Assembly (NCBI GenBank): GCA_002269645.1
Contig: NIVC01001800.1
Span: 1-35,047 of the forward strand
Length of the DNA: 35,047 nt
Source: Macrostomum lignano
Taxonomy: Eukaryota
Direction: 5' to 3'
Part shown: one piece after another, positions 1-31,431 of the stretch
Numbering within the stretch: the first letter of the stretch is position 1
How the letters are laid out: the number at the start of each line of letters is the position of its first letter
Translations under genes and position numbers: made by a program
Notes under the pieces: generated by a model
Database searches by the model: none
Seen by the model: the letters and a program-made list of their open reading frames with translations, nothing else
What the model was told of the DNA's origin: nothing

Positions 1-2560
1 TGAAGATTGCTGAGGCTGTACAGGCCAGGCCTCATCCTGATCAGGAACCCTGGATGCGCAACGGTAAGTTGCCCAACATTCCTCTGGCTACTCTGATTTT
101 TATGTGTGTGGCCGGGGACAGCCGCCCTAGAGCGGCTATCCTCGCTGCTAGCCATCTCCAAGCTTGGCTGAGGACTGATCTCTCTGATGGAGACCTTTGT
201 GTCATCCAATCTAATCATTTCTCTCCGCGTACGTGTCTTGTTGCCTCGGTTTATATCCCAGGCGACAGAGACCCTGCTCCTGAGAGTTTACTGCGCCTCG
301 CGCAGTACTGCGAGTCCCAGAACGCTGAGCTGTGCTTAGGGGGCGACCTCAACGCGCACCACAAGCACTGGGGCAGCAAAGATACCACACTAGAGGAGAG
401 GAGCTTCTGGCCCTCATCTCTAACACAAACCTCATGCTCTGCAACCGCGGCAGCACTCCTACCTTTAATAATGGCAGATGGACCGAGGTCCTCGACGCCA
501 CACTCGTTACCCCAAGACTCTTTGACAGAGTTGAGGAGTGGAGAGTCTGGTCTGAGGAGCCCTCCCTGTCTGACCACTGCTTTATCGCCTTTAACATCGC
601 GGACACTAAAACCCAGTCTCCGATCACTTGGAGACGCAATATCCGCAACACTGATTGGGCGGCCTACAAGGCTGCCCTTGATCTGCACCTGCAGGAACTC
701 ACGGACTTACGTCCGATTGAGACCTGCGAGGATGTGGATCATATGGCTGAGACGCTGACAGGTTGCATTATTGAAGCCTACGAAGCGGCTTGTCCTGCTC
801 GCGCCTACAAAGGCAAGACCTCGGCGCCGTGGTGGAACCCGGAGCTGGGGAAACTCAGGCGGAAGGCCAAAAGCCTTCATCGCCGTGCCATGAAGACCGG
901 AAACCCGGAGGACATGGAGCTTTTCCGGCAAGCCTCCCGCAATTTAAAATCTGAAGTGCGCAAGGCCAAGGAATGTAAGTGGCGCCAATTCTGCAATGAA
1001 TTGGATCAAGACAGACCTACTTCTAGGCTTGTCAAGGCCCTTACAATGGACAAAATGTCCAAATTAGCCATGATCAAAAAAGATGATGGCTCTCTTACTA
1101 AAGACCCTGAAGAAGTGCTTCAGCATATGCTTAGCACATTCTTCCCGAGGGTACCTACTGCTAGACCGGAGCCCAACCATTCGATGGATGGAGCCACCCT
1201 AGCGGCGGGCATTGTCACTGAAGACCTAATCGCTCGTGCGGTCAGAACCTTCAAACCCTTCAAATCTCCTGGACCTGATGGTATCTACCCTGTTCTCCTT
1301 CGTGAAGCAGCCAAGATACCCTCGTTCCTGAGACTCACCCGCAATCTCATGCGGGCCTCTATCCAGCTGGGATACGTTCCCAAATGCTGGACTGAAGCTC
1401 GGGTAGTCTTTATTCCCAAACCTGGGAAGGGTGACTACCAAAGCGTCAAGGCCTTCCGGCCTATTAGCTTAACGTCAGCAATGCTTAAGCTCACTGAGAG
1501 GCTTATTCTCTGGCGGCTGCTGTCCTGCGAGCTGACAGCGATGCCCCTCAGCAATAATCAGCACGCCTTCCGCACCGGGAGGTCGACTGACAGCGCCCTG
1601 CATGCGATTGTCGAGAAGATTGAAAGGGCGGTACTGGGTGACGGTTACGCTCTGGCTCTCTTTCTTGACATTGTTGGCGCCTTCGACAACGTTATCTTTG
1701 AAGCGTTTCAGAGGGCCCTTCAAAATCGCAAAGCTCATGCTACCCTCATACGGTGGATCATGTACATGATCTCCAACCGTACGGTCACTGCCCAACTTCT
1801 TGGGCAAACTGCCTCCACCAGAGTCTGTAAGGGTGGACCCCAAGGCGGAGTCCTCACCCCGACGCTCTGGAACCTGGTCATGGACGCTCTTTTGAGTGAC
1901 TCCCGACCCGACCCCGTCTTCAAAGTCGGGTATGCTCATGACGTCACGGCCATTGTGGCAGGACCGTCTCCCAGCACGCTCAGGGATCTGATGCAGAGCT
2001 TTATCCTTAAATTACCCTTAAGTGGGTTCCGGGGCATGTGGGGATCCGAGGAAATGAGTTGGCTGACACCCTTGCAAAAGTTGGTGCCTCCGGCTCCTCT
2101 CTCGGCCCCGAACCTCTTGTCCCGATTCCTGGCTGTGTCATCGACTCGCGCATCAAAGCGTGGATCAGGACTCAGCACCGCTCGACTTGGGCGAACCGCA
2201 CGAACTGCAGGCAATCCAGAGGCGCTGTCCCTCAGCCCTCTCACCAGCTCCGGAAGCTCCTCTTGCGCCTCTCGCGCAGAGACATCCGGGCTGCCACCAT
2301 GACCCTCTCTGGTCACGGCTGCTTCTCCAGGCACCAGTACCTGCAGGGCAACGCCACCAACGCCACCTGCAGTTTCTGCAACTCAGGTGACGAAACCGCT
2401 GAGCATTTCGTCAGCATCTGTCCCGCCTTCACGCGGGCCAGACTCACTTACCTCGGGCCACACACATCTATTACTGAAGCGTGCAAACCCGAAAACTTTA
2501 ATCAGCTCATGCGCTACCTTCGGGCCACCCGCAGGGCTGAACTCTCCTTTCCAGAGAGCA
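1..2560 (+). pseudogene. Disrupted LINE ORF2 (endonuclease/reverse transcriptase/RNase H)
   Basis: 1-nt frameshifts near 41 and 388; catalytic YADD reads YAHD (1931-1942); RT is joined directly to the RNase H C-terminus at ~2000-2010 with a frame change, implying a large internal deletion. Confidence 0.85.
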
Positions 2561-8270: not shown

Positions 8271-10571
8271 TTAATCATGTTCAAACTCTTTGAACAATGG
8301 CACAGCGCAATAACAGTCTTTGCTGAACGATTCTACTGGAACAGCGATGCAGGGTCGATCGACCTCTGAAAAATTAACTATACGTTCGCGTCTGGCCGAT
8401 CTGGGCGCATTAGACAGGGATATCAATACAAAATTGAATGTCGAAGACTTTTTGAACATGGATTCCAGCAATGCTTTCCAATTAAGTAAATCGATGGGGA
8501 AAGTTGCTGCTGGTACTCGTAAAACAAAATCAAACAGCGAACCAATGGGATCCAAAATTTGCACTCGAATAGTATTAGGCTCGAGGAACTCTGCAATAGT
8601 GCAGATTTCGCCGGACTTCAATTGGCAAAGATGGTTAGAATTTTTCGACGCACAAGCTGAGCTTGTCGAGAAAAAATGTCCATTAAAATAAGCAAGTGAG
8701 TTTCGAAGAATACCATGTGGCCTGGATGGCTCTAAAGATATAGAGTTAACTGCATCCACTACAATAGAGTCCTTAACACAAGAAAAGTAGTGATGTAGCA
8801 ACTTTTGAAACAAAAACTTGCGAACAAGCTGTGGGCCAAATGACACAGTTCCGCATAAGAACTTTTTGAACATGCCAATGGAGCTCTCAAATGCGAACAT
8901 AGAATAATTAAATACAGGTCCGTACAATTCGTACTGTTCAGCCATATGCAAAAGCAGGTGGAAATTAAGGCGGAGTACTTTCGGTCCGAATATTTGCTGA
9001 GCATTGGAGATAAAAGCTTTGCATAGCTTTTCGATATCAGTCTTATTTGATTGGGGGCTATACAACATGTGATAAATAAGAACTAAATTAGTTAACAGCA
9101 GTTTCAATGGAAAATGCGAAATTCTCTGCAAAAACGTAGGAAGAAGAAAGTATAGCGCAAAGTTTTTAAAATGCTTTGCTTTCCAATCTGAAAAGCCTTT
9201 AAAATTTGTGTTGATTGTGATGCTAGAAGGAGTTGTAGATTGACGAATACAATTAGATATGAAATCCATGCAATTAGCTGAGCAAAAATACAACTCGCGC
9301 CTGTTTGCAGGTAATGACAGCTCTTCTAGTAGATACTTGGTGTGGCCTTCGAAAAAGCAGTGTAAACTGTCAATAGGATTGCAGCTGGGAAACGGAACAT
9401 AGTCTAACAAGCAACTGCGCATCTTTACGCCAAAAACAGGCCGATTTCGAATTTGTGCGAGCCGACAGTGTTCAAGATGGGAAGATGGGTTTCTCAAAGG
9501 AAACAAGTAGCCTTCACCATAGCGGAAGATCCAGTTTTTACCTTTCTCGGATACTTTAAAGCTCTCACCTGGGTGCAAGCACCTAGGACAGCTAAACGCA
9601 CCATTGTACTGGTGAATGCAGAAGAGCTTAGCAAGAGCGGGCAAGTCACAAACAAAGAGTGTGTAATGGACATGAACGGTGTATTCCGAGAATATAAACT
9701 GTTTTGGCAAATTGTTCATAATTTCAGACAGAAAAGACTGGAAATGCGGGACTGCCTTCGATGAAACAAGAGCAATTAGAATTAAATTTGCAAAGCGTTG
9801 ACGGATGTAAACAGGAAGGTTTAGAAGTTGAGCCTGAAATGGCCAAAAGCTACTCTGAACAGATTCAAAAAAATTGGCGCCATCAGCTGAGATTAGAAGA
9901 TGCAAGTGAAGCGACTTGCCAGAAGATAGGCTTAAGCCTTGTTCTTTAACTATTTTGGAATTCAAAACGTCTGTGTTTTTATCCTTTTGCAATTCTTGCT
10001 CATACTGCAGAATAGTTGAAGTGTGGCTGCTTAAGATAGTCCGCAGCTGTGGAACAATATTGAGCTGTGTCACAGCAACCTTTGACTTTGGGGAATGAAC
10101 CTGACACTGGCTTTTGCATTCTGGGCAAAAGCCAAATTCAGACACGTCACTATCATCAAGAGGGCAAGTATCTTGAATCAATGATTTGAGCAACTTGACG
10201 CTATTTGGAAGAGCTAGAGAATCTCTACTAAAAATAGAAAGTAGCTTCAGGAGTCTATCAAGAGCAGCCTCTGAAACTCCGGAAGTAATTGCCCACTGAA
10301 AAATCAGAGCCGCCTGCACACTGGGATCTGAGATGGAAGCCAAATTCGCTAAGCTATCTGAACTCTCCTCAAGCACAGGCACAGCATTGTTTTCACCAAT
10401 AAAAGTTTCCACAGCGTCAGGACAGCTGTGCGAGTGCGTTACACCGGCTTCGCTTGAAATTGAACTCCTATTACTTGTAGAAAAACTATTTGAGGGAGAA
10501 GAAATCGCCTGACAAGAGTAGGCTGAGTAATTAGTAGAAAGAGAGTGCTCAGATTCTGATTTACTAGACAT
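8271..10571 (-). CDS. EnSpm/CACTA DDE transposase (TnpD-like), 766 aa, single exon, intact
   Basis: Motifs ISADG...WP...NLP..R, VCDLPA, CPRC, GVK, IDSLHCFFEG, WKAKHF, FHLLLH (H-x3-H), GPVFNYSMFAFES; uninterrupted ORF between the TIRs. Confidence 0.92.
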   Translation of the reverse strand: MSSKSESEHSLSTNYSAYSCQAISSPSNSFSTSNRSSISSEAGVTHSHSCPDAVETFIGENNAVPVLEESSDSLANLASISDPSVQAALIFQWAITSGVSEAALDRLLKLLSIFSRDSLALPNSVKLLKSLIQDTCPLDDSDVSEFGFCPECKSQCQVHSPKSKVAVTQLNIVPQLRTILSSHTSTILQYEQELQKDKNTDVLNSKIVKEQGLSLSSGKSLHLHLLISADGANFFESVQSSFWPFQAQLLNLPVYIRQRFANLILIALVSSKAVPHFQSFLSEIMNNLPKQFIFSEYTVHVHYTLFVCDLPALAKLFCIHQYNGAFSCPRCLHPGESFKVSEKGKNWIFRYGEGYLFPLRNPSSHLEHCRLAQIRNRPVFGVKMRSCLLDYVPFPSCNPIDSLHCFFEGHTKYLLEELSLPANRRELYFCSANCMDFISNCIRQSTTPSSITINTNFKGFSDWKAKHFKNFALYFLLPTFLQRISHFPLKLLLTNLVLIYHMLYSPQSNKTDIEKLCKAFISNAQQIFGPKVLRLNFHLLLHMAEQYELYGPVFNYSMFAFESSIGMFKKFLCGTVSFGPQLVRKFLFQKLLHHYFSCVKDSIVVDAVNSISLEPSRPHGILRNSLAYFNGHFFSTSSACASKNSNHLCQLKSGEICTIAEFLEPNTIRVQILDPIGSLFDFVLRVPAATFPIDLLNWKALLESMFKKSSTFNFVLISLSNAPRSARRERIVNFSEVDRPCIAVPVESFSKDCYCAVPLFKEFEHD

Positions 10572-15109: not shown

Positions 15110-17479
15110 CAGGGGCGCGTCCAGAGTTTTCAGGATGGGGGGGCCAGTTAGGGCCCAGTAAAAACTGAAGGGGCAATACCAACATCTTGAATTGAGTTTT
15201 TTAATTATTGTAAAAGCTAATTTTTACCGAAAAGTAAAAATGACATCCAAAAAAGATCTCACAAAGAATGAATGCTATAGCTAAGTTGATTTATATTCTC
15301 TCTTATTTACATTTAGACATTCTAAATGTTTTTTGCCCAAGAACACTTTTTAGGATTTGCAATTGGAAAATTTTTGAATAGAAAGCTAAACACAAATTCA
15401 TTTAACTTTACAGTTTACTTTTCCTGGCAGATTCTTATCAAAAAACTCTGTTGGTTCATTTAATTATTGGCTAATCTCTGCAAAGTATATATTTTTACTG
15501 AGAGGAGAGGGCAGAGAAGAAGGGGAGAGAGTAGGGAGAGATAAATAGGAGGAGAGAGTAGAGGTGAGAAGAGGGAGAGATGAGAGAGATGAGATGAGAG
15601 AGGAGAGAGTAGATAGGATGAAGTAGATAGGATAAAGGATAAAGAGAGGAGATAGAAGAGAGTAGAGATGAGAGAAGAGAGAAAAGATGGAAGAAAGTAG
15701 AGAGCAGATAGAAGAGAGTAGAGATGAGAGAGGAGAGAGTATATAGCAGAGAGTAGAAAGATGAGAGTGGAGAAAGGAGAGATTAGAAAGGGTGGAGATA
15801 AGCAAGCAGAGAAAAGAAAGAAGAGACGTTAAAAAGGATAGTACAGACTAGAGATCAGGGAGAGAGGAGATAGATAGGAGAGATGAGAAATGAGAGCAGA
15901 GAAGTAGAAAGAAGAGAGGAGAGAGAGAAGAGGAGGGAAGTTTTGAGAGATAGGAGAGTGAGAAGTGAGAAGAGGAGAGAGAGGAAACAGTGGAGAGCAG
16001 AGAGAAATGAGAAGAGATAAGAGAGCAAGCAAAGATAAACGAAGAAAAATGAGAGACGAATGACTAAAGTTAAGAGAAAAGAGATAAGGTGGTAGAGATG
16101 ACAGGAGAAATAAGAAATGAGATATGAGATATGAAAGAGAAGAGAGAGGAAAGTGGAGAGAGAAGAGAAGAGACAAGAGAAGAGAAGAGAGGAGAAAGGA
16201 AAGAGAGGAGTCAAAGATGGGAAATAAAAGAGTACAGGGAAAAGACATGAGAGAACATATAAGAGATTAAAGTTGACAGAAGAGAGAACAGAGACGAGAG
16301 TAAACAGACAAGAGATGGGAGAGTAGAGAGAACAGAGGACAGAGAAGAGATTATGAAGATGAGAGAAAAGAGTAGGGAGAAGAAAAATGTGTAAGAGCAG
16401 AGAAGAGATACAAAGGGAGAAAGAAGTGGAGTAAAGAGAGAAGAGGGGAGAGAATCGACAACAGATGGGAGAGAGGGGAGAGGAAAGAAGAGAATGGAGA
16501 GGGGAGAAAGTAGAGAGAAGAGAGATGGGCAGCGGAGAGCAGAGAGATAAATAAGAGGAGAGAGGAGAGAGGAAATAAGAGAGAAGATATGAGATGAGAG
16601 AGATGAGAGAGAAGAGAAGAGAGGAGAGAAAAGAGAGGAAAGGAAAGAGACGAGAGTAGAGGGGAAAGAGGAGAGAGGAGAGCAGAGAGAAAAAAGTAAG
16701 GAAAGAGGAAAGAACAGGGAAGAGATGAGATGAGAGAAGAGAGAGGCAAGAAAAAAGAGAAATGTGAAGCGATAAGAGTGCAGAGATAAAAGAAGAGAAA
16801 GGAGGGATCAGAGAAAAGACGTGAGAGAAGAGAGGTGGGGGAAGAGACAAAAGAAGAGGGGAGAGAGAAGAGAGGAAAGAGGAAAGAAGAGATGACAGGA
16901 GAGACGAAAGATGAGAGAATAGAGAAAAGAGAGGAAACAGAAGCAAAGATAGAAGTTTCAAAGGATCTGAGGGATGTACATGTAGAGAGAGGCAGAGGCA
17001 GAGGTCAGTTTTTTGTTGACTTTTCCAGTACATGTTTTAGATCGACATTGCCTGATATTCTGCACAGCATCCTAGCCAACGAGATCAATGCTTGCCTCAA
17101 ATCTTAATTTTACATGAATTTACTCCATTTTATGTTCATCTCCATCCTAACTATTAACAAGTTTTTGTTTGAGTATGACTTCAAATTCTAGAATATGTGC
17201 GAAAATAATTCCCGAGATTGGAATTCCACGGGTTCAAGATCCACAGGTTTCAACAGCTTACAAGTGTTTGTATAAAAACTATTGTTTCTAAAATTAAAAC
17301 TGCAAAAAAGAAAAAAAGGGTTTTTCAAACTATTTTTTGGAAAATCCAAAGTGAAAAAAACTGAAAGTGGGGGTGGGCCACAGGGGGGCCCGTGGCTTAA
17401 TTGGGGGGGGCCACAGGGGGGCCCGTGGCTTAATTGGGGGGCCCAGGCCCCCCCTAGCCCCCCCTTGGACGCGCCACTG
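15110..17479. mobile_element. Non-autonomous hAT-like element, 2370 bp
   Basis: TIR CAGGGGCGCGTCCA / reverse complement CAGTGGCGCGTCCA; perfect 8-bp TSD GATAAAAT (15102-15109 and 17480-17487); GGGGCCC-rich subterminal repeats. Confidence 0.88.
15497..17005 (+). repeat. ~1.5-kb purine-rich (A/G) low-complexity tract within the hAT element
   Basis: Plus strand almost entirely A and G with no fixed period; accounts for the L/S/F-rich minus-strand ORFs. Confidence 0.95.
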
Positions 17480-22059: not shown

Positions 22060-25000
22060 ATGTCTACTACATTGCTGCGCCTCTCAGCCAATGCCGCGAC
22101 ACTTGCCCGGCATCTACCCGTATATGGTCGCTGTTTGACCAATTGCGCTGCATTGACAGCAATGACAGCTACTCCCACTATTAGACCTACCTGGCAATTA
22201 GGCAAGACTCGATTTTCTTCCATCGCCGCTCTCTACAACAATCGCCGACCATTGTCAACAACCTCGTCATCAGCTTCATCAGCACCGGAGCCTGATCCAG
22301 ACTATCACAGCATCATCAGCAATGCCGAGCGAAGTCGCGGCTCATCGGAGCGACACGCCTTTCAAGCGGAAACTCGCCAATTATTAGACATTGTTGCCAA
22401 GTCATTGTACAGCGATAGGCACGTGTTTGTTCGCGAATTAGTGTCCAACGCTAGCGACGCTTTGGAGAAGCTGCGCCATTTGAGATTGTCCTCGGCGGCT
22501 GACAGCAACCAGCAGTTTGGTCCGCTAGAGATTCACCTGCAAACTGATGAGGATAAACGAACTCTAACTATACAGGACACCGGTATTGGCATGACGCGAG
22601 ATGAAGCCGTGTCTAATTTAGGCACTATAGCAAGGTCTGGCAGTCAAGAGTTTATCAAGCAGGCAGCATCGGGCTCCGGAGGTCAGACTGCCTCCGCCTC
22701 TGTGATTGGCCAATTTGGCGTTGGCTTCTATGCCTCGTTTATGGTGGCCGATAAAATTGACGTCTACAGCCAGAGCAGCTGTCAGGCCGATGCTAAACCT
22801 GTCAAGTGGAGCTCAGATGGATTGGGGAGCTATGAGGTTGGTGTGATTTGCCTAGCTTAGCAGTGATCCAAAGTATGCGGCTTTGTTTTGGGGCATTGTG
22901 CTGCTCACGACTCTAAATTGGCGCTCAAGTCTCACCTATGAGCCTCATATGGCGCTCAAGTCTCACCTATGAGCCTCATATGGCGCTCAAGTCTCACCTA
23001 TGAGCCTCATATGGCGCTCAAGTCTCACCTATGAGCCTCATATGGCGCTCAAGTCTCACCTATGAGCCTCATATGGCGCTCAAGTCTCACCTCTGAGCCT
23101 CAATTGGCGCTCAAGTCTCACCTATGAGCCACAATTGGCGCTCCAGTCTCACCTATGAGCCTCATATGGCGCTCAAGTCTCACCTATGGGGCTAAATTGG
23201 CGCTTAAGTTTCATTTATGGCGCTAAATTGGCGCTCGTCTCACCTATGGCGCTAAATTTTCGCTCAAGTCTCACCTATGAGCCTCAATTGGCGCTCAAGT
23301 CTCACCTATGAGCCTCAATTGCCAAATTGGCGCTCAAGTCTCACCTATGAGCCTCATATGGCGCTCAGGTCTCACCTATGAGCCTCAATTGGCGCTCAAT
23401 TCTCACCTATGAGCCTCATATGGCGCTCAGGTCTCACCTATGAGCCTCAATTGGCGCTCAATTCTCACCTATGAGCCTCATATGGCGCTCAGGTCTCACC
23501 TATGAGCCTCAATTGGCGCTCAATTCTCACCTATGAGCCTCATATGGCGCTCAGGTCTCACCTATGAGCCTCAATTGGCGCTCAAGTCTCACCTATGAGC
23601 CACAGTTGGCGCTCCAGTCTCCTATGGGGCTAAATTGGCGCTCAAGGTTCACATATGGCGCTAAATTGGCGCTAAAGTCTCACCTAGGATGCTAATTAAA
23701 ACATCTCCATTGTCTTTTTCATAAATAAGCAAGTGATGCTACTCTCCAATCCTGCACAGGTATCAGAGGCCGAGAACGTCAGCCCAGGCACCAAGATAGT
23801 GCTACACCTGAAGCCTGACTCTCTAGAATTTGCTAAAGACGAGAATTTGCGCACTATTGTGCAGCGCTACAGCGGCTTCGTTGCGGCCCCAATCTTTGTT
23901 AATGGACGGCGGGTGAATCCTGCGGAGCCATTGTGGCTCAAGGATGCCAGCAAAGTGACGCAAGAGGAGCACCAAGAGTTTTATAGGCTCGTATCCGGGG
24001 CCTATGATGCGCCTAGGTAATCCAGATGTTCTTTTAGAGTGCTCATTTCTCTACTGCTAATATCTAGACTTTTAAATTTGATCATAAAATCTGTCGCTTT
24101 ATCTACCCATAGAATCGCCCTTATCTACCCATAGAATCGCCCTTATCTACCCATAGAATCGCCCTTCTACCCATAGAATCGGCCTTATCTACCCATAGAA
24201 TCGCCCTTATCTAACCATAGAATCGCCCTTATCTAACCATAGAATCGCCCTTATCTACTCATAAAATCGCTCTTATCTACCCATAGAATCGCGCCCTTAT
24301 CTAACCATAGAATCGCCCTTATCTAACCATAGAATCGCCCTTATCTACCCATAGAATCGCCCTTCTACCCATAGAATCGGCCTTATCTAACCATAGAATC
24401 GCCCTTATCTAACCATAGAATCGCCCTTATCTACTCATAAAATCGCTCTTATCTACCCATAGAATCGCGCCCTTATCTAACCATAGAATCGCCCTTATCT
24501 AACCATAGAATCGCCCTTATCTACCCATAGAATCGCCCTTCTACCCATAGAATCGGCCTTATCTACCCATAGAATCGCCCTTATCTAACCATAGAATCGC
24601 CCTTATCTAACCATAGAATCGCCCTTATCTACTCATAAATCGCTCTTATCTACCCATAGAATCGCGCCCTTATCTAACCATAGAATCGCCCTTATCTAAC
24701 CATAGAATCGCCCTTATCTACCCATAGAATCGCCCTTCTACCCATAGAATCGGCCTTATCTACCCATAGAATCGCCCTTATCTAACCATAGAATCGCCCT
24801 TATCTAACCATAGAATCGCCCTTATCTACTCATAGAATCGCTCTTATCTACCCATAGAATCGCCCTTATCTAACCATAGAATCGCCCTTATCTAACCATA
24901 GAATCGCCCTTATCTACTCATAGAATCGCTCTTATCTACTCATAGAATCGCTCTTATCTACCCATAGAATCGGCCTTATCTACCCATAGAATCGCCCTTA

Positions 25001-28000
25001 TCTACCCATAGAATCGGCCTTATCTAACCATAGAATCGCCCTTCTACCCATAGAATCGGCTTTATCTAACCATAGAATCGCCCTTCTACCCATAGAATCG
25101 GCTTTATCTAACCATAGAATCGCCCTTCTACCCATAGAATCGGCTTTATCTAACCATAGCATCGCCCTACCATCATAGGTGCTCTAGGCTGCTGTAGTAA
25201 TCAATCACCGCCATTAACCTACTGACCCAGGTACGTGTTCTCGTACAAGACGGACGCTCCTCTGAACCTCCGCGCCCTGCTGTACATCCCGGAGTCCAAG
25301 CCGGCCCTATGGGAGATGAGTCGAGACTCGGAGTCAGGCGTGGCCCTCTACTCCAAAAGGGTGCTGGTGCTGCCCAAAGCTCAGCCGCTTCTGCCAAGAT
25401 GGCTGCGATTTCTCAAAGGCGTTGTGGACTCGGAAGATGTACCGCTAAACCTCAGCAGAGAGCTGCTGCAGGACAGCAGGCTGATTAGAAGGATTAACCT
25501 GGCACTGACTGGGCGTGTTATTCGGTTTCTTAGCGAGCAGGCTAAGAAAGATGCTGAGAAGTGAGTTAGTTGATGGCCGTTGATGCTTTTAAATCCCCCG
25601 GCTTTGAATTATGAAAATTTTGCTCCTGAAGCACACTGAGAATCGCCCCTGAAGTACACTGAGAATCGCCCCTGAAGTATACTGACAATCGCCCCTGAAG
25701 TACACTGACAATCGCCCCTGAAGTACACTGACAATCGCCCCTAAAGTACACTGAGAATCGCCCCTGAAGTACACTGAGATCTGAGAATACCCCTGTAAAA
25801 GTACACTGAGAATCACCCCTGCAGCACACTGAGATATCGCCCATGAAGCAGACTGAAAATCGCCCCTGAAGCACACTGAGAATCGGCCATGAAGCAGACT
25901 AAGAATCGCCCCTGAAGCACACTGAGAATCGCCCCTGAAGCACACTGAGATATCGCCCATGAAGCAGACTGAGAATCGCCCCTGAAGCTCACTGAGATAT
26001 CGCCCATGAAGCAGACTGAGAATCGCCCCTGAAGCACACTGAGATATCGCCCATGAAGCACACTGAGAATCGCCCCTGAAGCACACTGAGAATTCCCCCT
26101 GTAAAAGTACACTGAGAATCACCCCTGCAGCACACTGAGATATCGCCCATGAAGCAGACTGAGAAATCGCCCCTGAAGCAGATTGAGAATCGCCCCTGAA
26201 GCTTACTGAGAATCGCCCCTCCGCAGGTACGCCGGCTTCCACCGCGACTTCGGCCTATTCCTCAAAGAAGGCATCGTCACCACCCAGGACCAGGCTGAGA
26301 GAGAGAAAATCGCTGACTTATTGAGATTCGAAACCTCTGCCCAGCAACCGGGCCAGCTGACTTCTCTATCAGAATACGTGGCCCGCCAGGACGCCAGCTC
26401 GCGTAATATTCTGTTCCTTAGCGCTCCCAGCCGGCAGCTGGCGGAGACTTCGCCCTACCTTGAGGCCGTTCGCCATCGCAATCTGGAAGTAATTTTCCTG
26501 TACGAACCCTACGACGAATTGGTGCTGATGCAGTTGGGCCAATTTGCCGGCAAACAGTTGCAATCTGTTGAGAATGAAGCGTCAAGATCTGCTAGCGATG
26601 ATGATAATGCCAGCAAAGATGAGACAAGCACCAAACCGGATGCTGATAGCGAACAGCATGACAGTGCTGGGGACAATCGTTTATCTGAACGCGACGCCAA
26701 CGATCTGTCCTCGTTTATGACTACAGCTCTAGCTGGCCGAGTGAAATTAGTGAAGCCGACTAATCGGCTGACTACTCATCCTTGCGTTGTGTGTATTAAA
26801 GATCTGGGCGCTGTTAGACACCTGCTTAGGACTACAATGCACGATAGGTGAGTTGGGTAGGGTAAATAGGTTTTATGGTAGGTTTGGGTATGTTAGTAGG
26901 TTTCATGGTATGTTAAGGGTAGGGTAGTAGGTTTAATGGTAGGTTTTGGTAGTAGGTTTCATGGTAGGTTAGAGTAGTAGGTTTCATGGCAGGTTGGGGT
27001 AGTAGGTTTCATGGTAGGTTAGGGTAGTAGGTTTTATGGTAGGTTGAGGTAGTAAGTTTCATGGTAGGTTTTGGTAGTAGGTTTCATGGTAGGTTAGAGT
27101 AGTAGGTTTCATGGGAGGTTAGGGTACATGTAGGTTTCATGGTAGGTTAGGGTAGTACATGTAGATTTCATGGTAGGTTAAGGTAGTACATGTAGGTTTC
27201 ATGGTAGGTTAGGGTAGTAGGTTAGGGTAGTAGGTTTCATGGTAGGTTAGGGTGGTCGTTTTCATGGAAGGTTAGGGTAGTAGGCTTCATGGTAGGTTAG
27301 GGTAGTAGGTTTCATGGCAGGTTAGGGTAGTACATGTAGGTTTCATGGTAGGTTAGGGTAGTACATGTAGGTTTCATGGTAGGTTAGGGTAGTACATGTA
27401 GGTTTCATGGTAGGTTAGGGTAGTACATGTAGGTTTCATGGTAGGTTAGGGTAGTACATGTAGGTTTCATGGTAGGTTAGGGTGGTCGTTTTCATGGTAG
27501 GTTAGAGTTGTAGGCTTCATGGTAGGTTAGGGTGGTAGGCTTCATGGTAGGTTAGGGTAGTAGGTTTTATGTTAGGTTAGGGTAGTAGGCTTCATGGTAG
27601 GTTAGGGTGGTAGGCTTCATGGTAGGTTAGGGTAGTAGGTTTCATGGTAAGTTAGGGTGGTAGGCTTCATGGTAGGTTAGGGTAGTAAGTTTCATGGTAA
27701 GTTAGGGTGGTAGGCTTCATGGTAGGTTAGGGTAGTAGGCTTCATGGTAGGTTAGGGTAGTAGGTTTCATGGTAGGTTTGGGTAGTAGGCTTCATGGTAG
27801 GTTAGGGTAGTAGGCTTCATGGTAGGTTAGGGTAGTAGGTTTCATGGTAGGTTTGGGTAGTAGGCTTCATGGTAGGTTAGGGTGGTAGGCTTCATGGTAG
27901 GTTAGGGTAGTAGGTTTCATGGTAAGTTAGGGTGGTAGGCTTCATGGTAGGTTAGGGTAGTAGGCTTCATGGTAGGTTAGGGTAGTAGGTTTCATGGTAG

Positions 28001-28567
28001 GTTTGGGTAGTAGGTTTCATGTTAGGTTAGGGTAGTAGGTTATATGGTAGGTTTAGGTAGTAGGTTTCATGCATTCATGGGAGGTTAGGGTAGTAGTTTT
28101 TATGGTATGTTAGGGTAGTAGATTTCATGGTAGGATAATATTATTAGAGTGTTGGAGAGTATAGTATGCTATTATGAATACAGTTTCTGCTACCGTAGGC
28201 CTATAAGCTAAACTGTCTATTTACTAGCGAAATGTTTTTATTTCTACTTACAGTAGGCTGTTAGCGCACAGCGCCGTATCTTTATTCTAAATATAATAGG
28301 TAACAATAAAAATTCAATTTGTAATTCCATGCTAGGCCAGCCGAGGAGCGCCTTCGCCTGATGGAGCCGGTGCTGGAGATCAACGCTAAGCACCCGCTAA
28401 TCCGCAAGCTGTCAATCATGCGAACGGGCGATCCGGATCTGGCTAAATTATTCGCTCTGCAGTTGTGCGACAATGCGCTCACCATTGCCGGGGTGCTGGA
28501 AGATCCCAGGGCGATGATCGATCGGTTGAACGAGTTGCTAACGAAAGCGGCGGAGAAGATGCCTTGA
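22060..28567 (+). CDS. TRAP1: Mitochondrial HSP90 (TRAP1/HSP75), 5 coding exons, 738 aa
   Basis: Exons 22060-22836, 23760-24016, 25231-25560, 26227-26847, 28336-28567 (2217 nt, GT-AG, phases 0,2,2,2). [65 protein letters not shown]; Arg/Ser/Thr-rich presequence; no charged linker, no MEEVD. Confidence 0.95.
22905..23690. repeat. 31-bp minisatellite in TRAP1 intron 1 (GGCGCTCAAGTCTCACCTATGAGCCTCATAT)n
   Basis: Period 31 (22920, 22951, ...). Confidence 0.95.
24100..25170. repeat. 22-bp minisatellite in TRAP1 intron 2 (AGAATCGCCCTTATCTAMCCAT)n
   Basis: Period 22 (24135, 24157); the GCGCCC variant recurs at ~24291, 24467, 24664, indicating higher-order units. Confidence 0.95.
25625..26220. repeat. 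23-bp minisatellite in TRAP1 intron 3 (TGAGAATCGCCCCTGAAGCACAC)n
   Basis: Period 23 (25641, 25664); runs to within 6 nt of the acceptor at 26226. Confidence 0.95.
26855..28135. repeat. 25/31-bp minisatellite in TRAP1 intron 4 (GGTAGTAGGTTTCATGGTAGGTTAG)n
   Basis: 25-bp unit, with a 31-bp TACAT-containing variant (27331, 27362); TTAGGG forms at most unit junctions. Confidence 0.95.
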
Positions 28568-28794
28568 CTTTATTGCTGTTTGACTGGACAGTATCCATTG
28601 TGTGCTTGTGCTGTTAGTGGTTAATTACTGCCGGCTTTACATCCTTTGCTTTTCGTGTTGCATAAATATTGAGAAACAGTTTATAGGACTGTCCAGTTGA
28701 GAGAATTTATATGGCTAGAGTATAGAAAAGGATAGATCAATAAATAAAAAAGGTTTTGTGGTAAATAAAGAGTGGGTGGTATAAAGAAGCGTAG

Positions 28795-29342
28795 CTAGGA
28801 GAGTAGAACGGTAGACAGGAGGGTAGAGTGGTAGACAGGAGGGTAGAGCGGTAGACAGGAGGGTAGAGTGGTAGACAGGAGGGTAGAGCGGTAGATAGGA
28901 GGGTAGAGCGGTAGACAGGAGGGTAGAGCGGTAGACAGGAGAGTAGAACGGTAGACAGGAGGGTAGAGTGGTAGACAGGAGAGTAGAACGGTAGACAGGA
29001 GGGTAGAGCGGTAGTCAAGAGGGTAGAGCGGTAGACAGGAGGGTAGACAGGAGGGTAGAGCGGTAGTCAAGAGGGTAGAGCGGTAGACAGGAGGGTAGAG
29101 TGGTAGACAGGAGGGTAGACAGGAGGGTAGAGCGGTAGTCAAGAGGGTAGAGCGGTAGACAGGAGGGTAGAGTGGTAGACAGGAGGGTAGAGTGGTAGAC
29201 AGGAGAGTAGAGCGGTAGATAGGAGGGTAGAGTGGTAGACAGGAGGGTAGAGTGGTAGACAGGAGGGTAGAGTGGTAGACAGGAGGGTAGAGTGGTAGAC
29301 AGGAGAGTAGAGCGGTAGATAGGAGGGTAGAGTGGTAGACGC
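28795..29342. repeat. 20-bp minisatellite (GAGGGTAGAGCGGTAGACAG)n downstream of TRAP1
   Basis: Direct tandem repeat beginning just after an AATAAA at ~28740. Confidence 0.95.
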
Positions 29343-29742
29343 AAGAACAAGATGTTTACATGCGGCAGCAATTAAGATTTATGAGCAACTTTGATAACTC
29401 TTTACACCAGCAATATTTGAGAACTCATGAAAAGCTTAACTAGCTGATATATGATTAGTGTCTTTGCTTCTTATCTTTCAATGTTGCACTGACTGTAACA
29501 ACATAATTTAATTCTTGAACAACAATTAAGGAAAATTGCTTTTTAACCAGCTTTTTGTCTGAGAATAATTAATTCAGCATTTTGTGGACAAGATACATAT
29601 TGCTCTAGTAAGTTTCACATATTACTGCTTGTTAGTTTGAATTGAAAATACAACTGTGTTTTATTAGGAAAAAATATTACACCTGTTGTAGTTGTTATGA
29701 CGAACAAACCAATTTATTTGGATATTAGATATAAAAGTACCT

Positions 29743-30283
29743 GTTGCCATAGCAACCACATATTTTAACATAATCTAAATTCTTATTATGATAATGATCT
29801 CAGTTCTCATAGCAACCAGGCACATTCATATAGCTAGTCTCAATTATAATTCCTGTTGCCATAGCAACCAAACACTTTCATATATTAGCCAGTCTCAATC
29901 AGAATGCCAGTTGCCATGGCAACCAAACATTCATATAGCTAGTCTCAATAATTATCCCAGTTGCCATAGCAGCCAAACACATTCATGTAGCTAGTCCGAA
30001 TGATAATCCCTGTTGCCATAGAAACCAAACACATTCATATATGGCTAGTCTCATTCACAACTCCAGTTGCCATAGCAACCAAACACATGGCTAGTCTCAA
30101 TAATAATCCCTGTTGCCATAGCAACCAAACAAATTCATATATGGCTAGTCTCATTCACAACTCCAGTTGCCATAGCAACCAAACACATATATAGCTAGTC
30201 TCAATAATAATCCCAGTTACCATAGCAACCAAACACATTCATATATGGCTAGTCTCATTGCATGCTCCAGTTGCCATGACAAC
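29743..30283. promoter_or_regulatory. Tandem array of 11 RFX X-box-like motifs (GTTRCCATRGCAAC) ending over the DTYMK start codon
   Basis: 14-mers start at 29743, 29803, 29855, 29910 (perfect palindrome GTTGCCATGGCAAC), 29960, 30012, 30066, 30112, 30166, 30216, 30270. Motif match is direct; function is unproven. Confidence 0.6.
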
Positions 30284-31431
30284 CAAGCGCGGCCTATTCG
30301 TAGTCCTAGAAGGCATGGACCGGGCCGGCAAGTCCTCGCAGTGCCGCCGGCTTGTGGACCACCTGAACAGCATCGGGCATCGAACCGAGCTCATGCGATT
30401 CCCCGAGCGCGACTCGGCCATCGGCAGCCTGATTGGCCAGTATCTGGGCAGGAAAATCGAACTTGACGATCACGCCGTCCACCTGCTGTTCTCGGCCAAT
30501 CGCTGGGAGTTTCGGCCGCATATCTTGGACACCCTGGCCAGTGGAGTGAACATTGTGTGCGACAGATATGCATACAGCGGCATTGCCTTCACCGCCGCCA
30601 AGGCTGATGGCCCCGACTTTCACTGGTGCTGCCAGCCCGAGGTGGGCCTGCCCGCTCCCGACCTCAAGGTCAGATCTGGGCAGATGGGATCAGGAAGTGG
30701 GGAGATGGGATCAGGGAGTGGGGAAGATGGGATCAGGGAGTGGGCAGATGGGATCAGGGAGTAGGGAGATGGGATCAGCGAGTGGGGAGATGGGATCAGG
30801 GAGTGGGAATATGGGATCAGGCAGTGGGAGATGAGATCATGGAGTGGAAAGCTGGTATCAGATAGTGGGGAGATGGGATCAGGGATCGTGGGAGATGGGA
30901 TCAGGGATCGTGGGAGATGGGATCAGGGATCGTGGGAGATGGGATCAGGGATCGTGGGAGATGGGATCAGGGATCGTGGGAGATGGGATCAGGGATCGTG
31001 GGAGATGGGATCAGGGATCGTAGGAGATGGGATCAGGGATCGTGGGAGATGGGATCAGGGATCGTGGGAGATGGGATCAGATAGTGGGGAGATGGGAACA
31101 TGGAATAGGACAGATCCCCACCATCTTGCAGATCTTCCTGTCTGTGAGCCCCGAGGCGCAGGCAAGTCGCGGCGGCTTCGGAGCCGAGCGCTACGAAGTG
31201 GCGGACTTCCAGCGACGGGTCGGCGAGGCCTACGCCAGACTGATGCGGCTGGAGGACCAGGCGGGCGGCTCCTGCCCTGCCTGGCTCACCATCAACGCCG
31301 ACGGCGCCTTCGACGAGGTGCAGCAGCAGCTGGCTAAGGCCGTGGTTGCCGCCATCGACTGTCCGCGCTCTGCCGGTCCGCCCGCTGGCCTGCGGTTTCC
31401 GACTGCCGGTGGCCGAGGCTGCGAGGCCTGA
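30276..31431 (+). CDS. DTYMK: Thymidylate (dTMP) kinase, 2 exons, 230 aa
   Basis: Exons 30276-30668 and 31132-31431; P-loop LEGMDRAGKSSQ, RFPER, HLLFSANRWE, DRYAYSG, PDLK|IFL, FGAERYE. Confidence 0.93.
30683..31100 (+). repeat. 22-bp G-rich minisatellite filling the DTYMK intron (GGGAGATGGGATCAGGGATCGT)n
   Basis: Three GGG runs per unit on the sense strand; occupies most of intron 30669-31131. Confidence 0.95.

Follow-up and report, generated by a model that had tools for sequence, protein, structure and literature searches.

Immediately upstream of DTYMK, the gene for deoxythymidine monophosphate (dTMP) kinase, the flatworm Macrostomum lignano carries a tandem array of near-palindromic 14-mers with the sequence of the X-box, the recognition site of RFX transcription factors. 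We analyzed this array in contig NIVC01001800.1 of assembly Mlig_3_7, the whole 35,047 nt of which are referred to as the window. The array is best described as a locus-private minisatellite that arose from the splice-acceptor/start segment of DTYMK, is located in an annotated precursor-RNA spacer and is removed from the mature mRNA; we place the probability of this description at roughly 0.85. We lean toward regarding the array as neutral, or as an at most mildly modulatory by-product of pervasive minisatellite formation. Of the properties expected of an RFX element, it shows the sequence, but neither an excess conservation of the motif nor a link to DTYMK in other species; the X-box cluster could bind RFX without having been built or kept for it.

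A minisatellite of X-box units upstream of DTYMK

All eleven near-palindromic 14-mers described in an earlier note on this DNA were recovered between positions 29743 and 30283, at spacings of 60, 52, 55, 50, 52, 54, 46, 54, 50 and 54, and the note's assignment of the 14-mer to the RFX X-box consensus proved sequence-perfect. Ten of the 11 copies conform to GTHNYYATRRNAAC, the strict nematode-type consensus, which is expected to match 0.2 times per window, and seven have both GTTRCY half-sites. A search for GTTGCCATGGCAAC allowing up to three mismatches returned 12 matches in the 35-kb window, 11 of them inside the array, as compared to a mean of 1.46 in shuffled sequences. The array likewise fits the general X-box definition (GTNRCC N0-3 RGYAAC or GTHNYY AT RRNAAC).

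Tandem Repeats Finder (TRF) reported a period of 52 bp (9.4 copies) and also one of 104 bp (4.8 copies); the 3′ half of the array is therefore a dimeric A/B higher-order repeat. To the list of eleven we add a decayed unit at 29689–29742, the alignment score of which, 27.5, was reached by 0/2000 shuffles (0.4 ± 6.2), and the array therefore has 12 units, of about 52–54 bp each. Units of 10–100 bp arranged head to tail, with units 0 and 1 decayed at the edge, are the organization of a minisatellite or variable number tandem repeat (VNTR). The features of the array are as follows.

29689..29742, + strand: unit 0, decayed, with the broken X-box GTTGTTATGACGAAC
29730..29737, + strand: TATA-box-like octamer TATAAAAG, 6 nt 5′ of X-box 1, conserved in L001, a contig carrying the second allele
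29743..30269, + strand: units 1–10, a 46–60-bp repeat, each unit opened by an X-box 14-mer; units 6–10 are A/B dimers
30264..30286, + strand: terminal partial unit, comprising the acceptor CTCCAG at 30265–30270, X-box 11 at 30270–30283, the ATG at 30276 and the first 11 nt of coding sequence

The earlier observation that the first two copies retain little besides the 14-mer holds for copy 1, in which a perfect X-box stands in a unit that is otherwise decayed, and fails for copy 2, which has a well-kept spacer and the worst X-box of the array. Unit 0, its own X-box broken, has the sequence ATGAC in common with copy 11. As ATGAC is found in the edge units 0 and 11 and ATAGC in the interior units, amplification has spread a variant whose palindrome is slightly better than that of the ancestral, or edge, form.

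Probable origin of the array from the 5′ edge of the gene

The gene downstream of the array encodes a two-exon dTMP kinase (MTTKRG...) that gives a match to Pfam PF02223 (Thymidylate_kin; E=4e-40) and shares 52% identity with animal DTYMK. Homology to its relatives starts at residues 5–6 (RG), so the ATG at 30276 is the start. In agreement with the earlier note, copy 11 of the array (GTTGCCATGACAAC, 30270–30283) contains this ATG and supplies the first codons of the kinase.

30276..30668, + strand: dTMP kinase exon 1, 131 codons
30673..31104, no strand assigned: 22-bp minisatellite filling the single DTYMK intron (30669–31131)
31132..31431, + strand: dTMP kinase exon 2, stop codon included

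The terminal partial unit at 30264–30286 reads GCTCCAG TTGCC ATG ACAACCAA; within its 23 nt, the acceptor is followed by the start codon and 3.7 codons. These last 23 nt are common to the array and the 5′ edge of the gene, which makes amplification of the start region the simplest origin of the array, as the earlier note had proposed. A contribution of more than 23 nt from this edge was rejected, since past 30286 no unit aligns better to the coding sequence than to shuffled or other coding segments. The array starts and ends with an X-box segment, as expected from growth by exchange between short direct repeats at an exon edge. Descent from a retro-copied mRNA that bore the spliced leader was likewise rejected, the 35-nt leader showing no significant match to the array (96/500 shuffles score as well).

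In the mechanism that we propose, unequal exchange or replication slippage would have grown the array from the 23-nt segment at the 5′ edge of dTMP kinase exon 1. This seed would happen to be a good RFX X-box, with the acceptor supplying its G, the Kozak-like GCCATG its center and the Thr-Thr codons its ACAAC; ordinary constraints on acceptor, start context and Thr codons would in this manner explain the seed 14-mer in part. Because the seed segment is an X-box, every copy would carry one, giving 10 consensus sites.

The array as a probable outron or intron of an annotated TRAP1–DTYMK transcriptional unit

The array is located in the 1.7-kb spacer between TRAP1 and DTYMK, both of which lie on the same strand. 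The spacer holds the following features.

28565..28567, + strand: stop codon of the upstream gene TRAP1/HSP75, with AATAAA at 28739, 28743 and 28764
28797..29340, no strand assigned: unrelated 20-bp minisatellite of 28 copies in the first third of the spacer, also present in L001
29564..29607, + strand: 44-nt mini-exon (IINSAFCGQDTYCS) of the fused TRAP1–DTYMK model P0245, with the donor GTAAG at 29608
30061..30066, + strand: CTCCAG, a potential alternative spliced-leader acceptor (motif [T/C]TNCAG) upstream of X-box 7
30161..30166, + strand: CTCCAG, a second potential alternative spliced-leader acceptor, upstream of X-box 9
30270, + strand: annotated start of the 5′-partial DTYMK coding sequence (VAMTTK..., PAA52608.1 and others)

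The annotated names of TRAP1 and DTYMK share a unit prefix both in the window (Mlig002182.g40/.g41) and in L001 (Mlig021008.g1/.g2). The transcriptional units of this annotation are assembled precursor RNAs, which TBONE divides into genes where trans-splicing and polyadenylation have been mapped by experiment (PMC5730564), and the top motif at M. lignano spliced-leader acceptors is [T/C]TNCAG (PMC8629364). This motif is found at the exon junction of DTYMK as the CTCCAG of 30265–30270. The annotated 5′ end of the DTYMK mRNA has CTCCAG immediately 5′ of TTGCCATG, and the 5′-partial coding sequences start at window position 30270 and at L001:17004 (AMTTK...), 0–3 nt from the CAG; annotation of the coding sequence from 30270 puts the 5′ end of the mature mRNA at the AG of the acceptor. 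CTCCAG occurs only three times between 29500 and 30300, each time in repeat register, upstream of X-boxes 7, 9 and 11.

With a single annotated TRAP1–DTYMK unit and an annotated mRNA 5′ end at the copy-11 CAG, copies 0–10 would be removed as outron or intron. The X-boxes lie 0–530 bp from the ATG, but inside the annotated unit and 5′ of the splice acceptor; going by this annotation, the array is most likely an outron or intercistronic RNA rather than a classical upstream promoter. An independent UniProt model, P0245, joins the mini-exon at 29564–29607 to exactly the copy-11 acceptor, by which the whole array becomes an intron; the GTAAG at 29608 that serves as its donor is the sole GTRAG donor in the spacer, and the fused model itself may have been derived by computation alone. 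The array contains 12 upstream ATGs, among them that of a 73-codon out-of-frame open reading frame (ORF) which runs from 30245 and overlaps the start; a 5′ UTR that included the array would be poorly translated, and translation thus requires its removal.

From the TRAP1 poly(A) signals (28739–28769) to the acceptor the distance is ~470 bp after the two arrays are subtracted, and the operon threshold used for M. lignano is a repeat-adjusted distance of <1 kb (PMC8629364). The operon criteria of that study also ask for adjacent genes on one strand and for trans-splicing of the downstream gene. TRAP1 and DTYMK share strand and unit name, and would form an operon if DTYMK is trans-spliced, as the annotation suggests. 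We propose that the array would be transcribed and then discarded when the spliced leader or the upstream mini-exon is joined at the junction 30270/30271, and that the mature mRNA would then begin 5 nt before the AUG.

Two further observations concern these transcripts and their models. Joining of the 35-nt spliced leader, whose last bases are ...TTGCATG, at 30271 would open a 3-codon upstream open reading frame (uORF; MLP*) at the leader AUG, the UGA of this uORF overlapping the DTYMK AUG as AUGA in an arrangement that resembles termination-reinitiation. The 90% cluster of protein P0121 mixes TRAP1 and DTYMK proteins because of the fused 971-aa model (P0245, UniProt A0A1I8HW21).

Two alleles of the array

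The gene order TRAP1, DTYMK, innexin is found in the window and on three more contigs, L001, L002 and L003. While L002 and L003 are near-identical to the window, L001 represents a diverged allele, with 2.3% substitutions in the unique spacer and 1.0–1.3% in the DTYMK exons. Presence of the array on four contigs that represent two alleles ~2% apart rules out an assembly artefact.

The two alleles differ in unit order, as is characteristic of a VNTR: L001 carries a second copy of unit 5, lacks one of the A/B dimers and has mutations in two X-boxes (GTTACC, GCTACC). The X-box total is 11 in each of the two. The copy-number “dial” that the earlier note had envisaged is thus not seen, with 11 X-boxes in every one of the four assembly copies, though unit order differs.

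The alleles also differ beyond the array. L001 is without the ~230-bp TRAP1 3′ untranslated region (UTR) that holds AATAAA (window 28568–28796 versus L001 15517–15540), so that the alleles may use different poly(A) sites. In L001, the 20-bp minisatellite starts 21 nt past the TRAP1 stop codon.

Minisatellites are pervasive in the M. lignano genome

Simple and tandem repeats make up 15% of the M. lignano genome (PMC5730564), and repeats inflate its operon spacers (PMC8629364). In 284 kb of M. lignano DNA we counted 79 distinct minisatellites, or one per 3.6 kb. From the measured density of arrays, chance is estimated to provide the 764-Mb genome with ~60 arrays that carry a strict X-box and with 1–2 near-perfect-palindrome arrays. 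Strict X-boxes were found at one site in 223 kb of unrelated M. lignano loci, which is the chance level, and in none of 77 other M. lignano arrays, one of which gave a loose match. No further 52-bp unit was detected by nhmmer in the 223 kb of other loci, a sample of 0.03% of the genome with low power.

The introns of the two neighboring genes are occupied by comparable arrays. Every TRAP1 intron and the single DTYMK intron consist almost wholly of one private minisatellite each (periods 31, 22, 23, 25/50 and 22; window 22916–28134 and 30673–31104, L001 10848–15083 and 17408–17780), reaching to within a few nucleotides of the splice sites. The other allele has these intron arrays too, the copy numbers of some differing by as much as two-fold. 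The loose X-box match, the only one among the 77 other arrays, belongs to a 34-bp minisatellite of 22 copies in the ANAPC10 gene (L012:15671–16421; GTGGCCCCAGCAAC).

Evaluation of the array as a candidate RFX-responsive element

The alternative that survives best, unlikely as we consider it, is that the array is a functional homotypic RFX cluster, the 10–11 X-boxes of which would recruit RFX dimers to the spacer DNA: an internal promoter, enhancer or Crt1-like repressor through which DTYMK would be regulated independently of TRAP1, with unequal exchange tuning the number of sites. The copies match the X-box consensus perfectly; the GTTRCY monomer site and the RFX residues that contact DNA are conserved from fungi to animals (bioRxiv 10.1101/2022.11.11.515474); a tapeworm has an rfx3-like gene (PMC6225667); in C. 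elegans, the presence of more than one X-box tunes expression (PMC3245922); and reporters can be driven from synthetic 3x X-box repeats. The octamer TATAAAAG at the 5′ edge of the array could, by its resemblance to a TATA box, possibly mark the start of an independent transcript. Binding of RFX to the array is plausible from the motif. The more specific proposal, of an RFX-bound internal control element in a flatworm operon that uncouples DTYMK from TRAP1 as activator or Crt1-like repressor and whose site number evolves by unequal exchange, strikes us as a degree more doubtful.

Several observations weigh against the array being a by-product. Of the 11 substitution events, nine affect sites at which the nematode consensus is degenerate (p=0.01). 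The strict X-box is kept by 10 of the 11 copies, including copy 1, where it is perfect in an otherwise decayed unit. The X-box count is 11 in all four assembly copies, whereas neighboring arrays differ about two-fold between the alleles. A near-perfect palindrome on a gene start is rare by chance, and the palindrome is better in the interior units than in the edge units. Trans-splicing and co-transcription, finally, are inferred from the deposited annotation. The substitution bias, seen under one consensus, and the equal X-box count of all alleles speak at the same time for the RFX cluster.

Other measurements speak against a cluster maintained for RFX. The 14-mer, which the earlier note took for the best-kept part of the unit, is so marginally at most: within units, its substitution rate of 4.8% compares with 6.7% for the remaining positions when the A/B junction (18–25%) is set aside (Fisher p=0.64), and the best-kept window, CATAGCAACCAAACA, is offset from the X-box. 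Conservation of the motif above its flanks is thus not seen within units. Between the alleles, orthologous units 1–5 diverge by 1.9% and the adjacent unique spacer by 2.3%, and the X-box positions show 0/84 differences with ~1.7 expected, a comparison without power. The tolerance signal depends on the consensus chosen, for under GTTRCY-NN-RGYAAC only 4/11 substitutions are tolerated (p=0.65). The phasing of about five helical turns suggested by the earlier note is likewise absent, as the X-box starts do not favor any face of the helix (mean resultant length 0.23, Rayleigh p=0.55).

The same holds for the context of the sites. The array is annotated as transcribed precursor, and its role as an RFX-controlled promoter of DTYMK is not supported, since going by the annotation copies 0–10 would be outron or intron. 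When X-boxes were sought at DTYMK in other species, none was found within ~3 kb 5′ of the gene in Watersipora, Capitella, Xenopus tropicalis, Strongylocentrotus, Lytechinus or Saccoglossus, so a link between RFX and deoxynucleoside triphosphate (dNTP) supply is not conserved in these six animals. The chance estimate of ~60 strict-X-box arrays and 1–2 near-perfect-palindrome arrays per genome also counts against the cluster. Taken together, the X-box sequence and the start-region origin are supported from the RFX interpretation of the earlier note, and the promoter, the excess conservation, the phasing, the dial and the conserved RFX-dNTP link are not.

RNA-level and transposon-based alternatives

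A role of the array at the RNA level, with its acceptor and hairpin modules (GUUGC-CAUA-GCAAC) as decoy or alternative acceptors or as structured spacers that set the efficiency of trans-splicing or translation, is improbable. It would accord with the three exact [T/C]TNCAG acceptors in repeat register, with the single GTRAG donor of the entire spacer and with the MLP* uORF that a spliced leader at 30271 would create across the main AUG. Each palindrome of the array folds into a 5-bp hairpin, and the array as a whole folds better than shuffles (z=-3.7); the hairpins are, however, short and weak, and a low z-score of this kind is expected of any palindrome-bearing repeat. Rfam gave no match in the window, and a comparable element in flatworm trans-splicing is not known.

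Less probable still is that a transposon-derived or dispersed repeat, such as a Helitron-type end, inserted 5′ of DTYMK, bringing the acceptor and the ATG with it. Helitron hairpins typically lie ~10–12 nt from the CTRR end. The flatworm unit can be phased as TC...GTTGCCATAGCAAC...CTAG, Helitron families can be largely minisatellites (PMC12001565), the core TTGCCATAGCAAC(C)AAA is present at two unrelated M. lignano loci (twice in L010, and in L013), and a 58-bp intronic array of an environmental animal (L029) contains the 20-mer found in the flatworm unit; against this, the hairpin is 27 nt from CTAG, similarity to L010, L013 and L029 ends after ~17–28 nt, the low-power nhmmer search of 223 kb returned no dispersed copy of the 52-bp unit, and the window holds no Rep/helicase gene, so that the array does not classify as a Helitron-derived minisatellite.

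Related sequences elsewhere and other features of the window

An extended form of the core, TTGCCATAGCAAC(C)AAA...ATTGTTTTTT, is located at L010:1584–1640 (twice in tandem), at L013:18270–18305 (- strand) and at L012:3840; a 13-mer of it is expected ~0.007 times in 223 kb. The extended core could be a preferred X-box form or a fragment of a small dispersed repeat.

A scan of metagenomes with the 20-mer GTTGCCATAGCAACCAAACA returned 21 contigs. In one of them, L029 (Ga0224511_10119663), a minisatellite of 16 58-bp units at 1882–2812 contains GTTGCCATAGCAGCCAAACA, the 20-mer of the flatworm unit, and its exon translations suggest that the array is intronic in an HDAC6-like gene; a second array of 30-bp units at 1–115 carries GTAGTCATGACAAC. 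The 58-bp array was rejected as a homologue of the flatworm array, the units having only the 20-mer in common. Ten others of these metagenome contigs (L021-L023, L027, L030, L033-L035, L040 and L041; Ga0126336-41, Ga0099809) share a conserved noncoding element of ~400 bp, centered on the same X-box+CCAAACA 20-mer. Several of these come from one sample, and the element is thus a dispersed repeat or multi-copy promoter in some invertebrate host. These matches hint that the extended X-box form recurs in invertebrate DNA, and they leave our verdict on the array unchanged.

The remainder of the window carries mobile-element and low-complexity sequence. On the - strand at 8271–10571, an intact transposase-like ORF of 766 aa (DUF1258/DUF4218) has copies of 100% identity on 8 other Mlig_3_7 contigs (P0248) and looks like a recently active DNA transposon; two families paralogous to it have 62–63% identity (P0249, P0250). 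A non-long-terminal-repeat (non-LTR) retrotransposon ORF with endonuclease and reverse transcriptase occupies 332–2302 (+ strand), a 1.4-kb GA-rich low-complexity tract 15500–16940, and a direct repeat of a G-rich 33-mer (TGGGGGGGGCCACAGGGGGGCCCGTGGCTTAAT) 17368–17441.

Comparison with known systems

A natural tandem X-box array was not found in the literature searched. If its X-boxes are used, the array, as the first homotypic X-box array found in nature, would exemplify a transcription-factor platform that grew as a minisatellite from a gene's splice-acceptor/start segment, and it would be a candidate for a promoter or silencer internal to a flatworm operon; M. lignano is the one flatworm with stable transgenesis, which makes the RFX question testable. 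If the X-boxes are not used, the array is a caution that perfect-looking site clusters arise as by-products at one minisatellite per 3.6 kb, and that motif arrays beside genes are not readable as regulation without binding data. Either way, repeat growth reaches functional sequence, the last unit supplying the 3′ splice site, the AUG and the first codons.

Recognition by RFX of GTTRCY, and of the X-box GTNRCC N0-3 RGYAAC, is conserved between fungi and animals (bioRxiv 10.1101/2022.11.11.515474). The ciliary-gene X-boxes of RFX/DAF-19 in C. elegans, Drosophila and vertebrates have the same 14-mer consensus as the flatworm array and, like it, lie near the ATG; more than one site per gene tunes output there, as at F25B4.2 (PMC3245922). 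At known RFX/DAF-19 targets, the sites number one to three and precede the transcript; the flatworm array has 10–12, head to tail, in annotated precursor RNA, the last spanning the splice acceptor and the start codon. The RFX/DAF-19 targets are ciliary, whereas the putative target in the flatworm is a nucleotide kinase.

Yeast Crt1/Rfx1 represses RNR2/3/4 via several X-boxes. The flatworm locus resembles this system as a dNTP-supply gene with multiple X-boxes, and differs from it in that Crt1/Rfx1 is a fungal damage-checkpoint repressor and DTYMK is without X-boxes in the six other animals sampled; flatworm RFX is not known to act on replication genes.

The repeat-inflated operon spacers of M. 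lignano described by Ustyantsev & Berezikov 2021 (PMC8629364) share with the TRAP1–DTYMK spacer the same-strand genes, the [T/C]TNCAG acceptor and a repeat-subtracted distance of <1 kb. That study treats spacer repeats as neutral filler and, unlike the DTYMK array, contains no case in which the repeat unit is the acceptor/start segment or carries a transcription-factor consensus.

The nearest analogue belongs to the same pathway: the VNTR of the human thymidylate synthase enhancer region (TSER) of TYMS, in which 28-bp repeats with USF E-boxes lie just 5′ of the ATG (PMC7712088). Both loci have a minisatellite at the start codon of a thymidylate-pathway gene, a transcription-factor site in each unit and alleles that differ in repeat structure. 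The 2–9 TSER repeats carry E-boxes and remain in the mature 5′ UTR, whereas the flatworm array carries X-boxes, is spliced off according to the annotation and includes the start codon itself. By analogy, the array could act as a promoter-proximal VNTR bearing transcription-factor sites.

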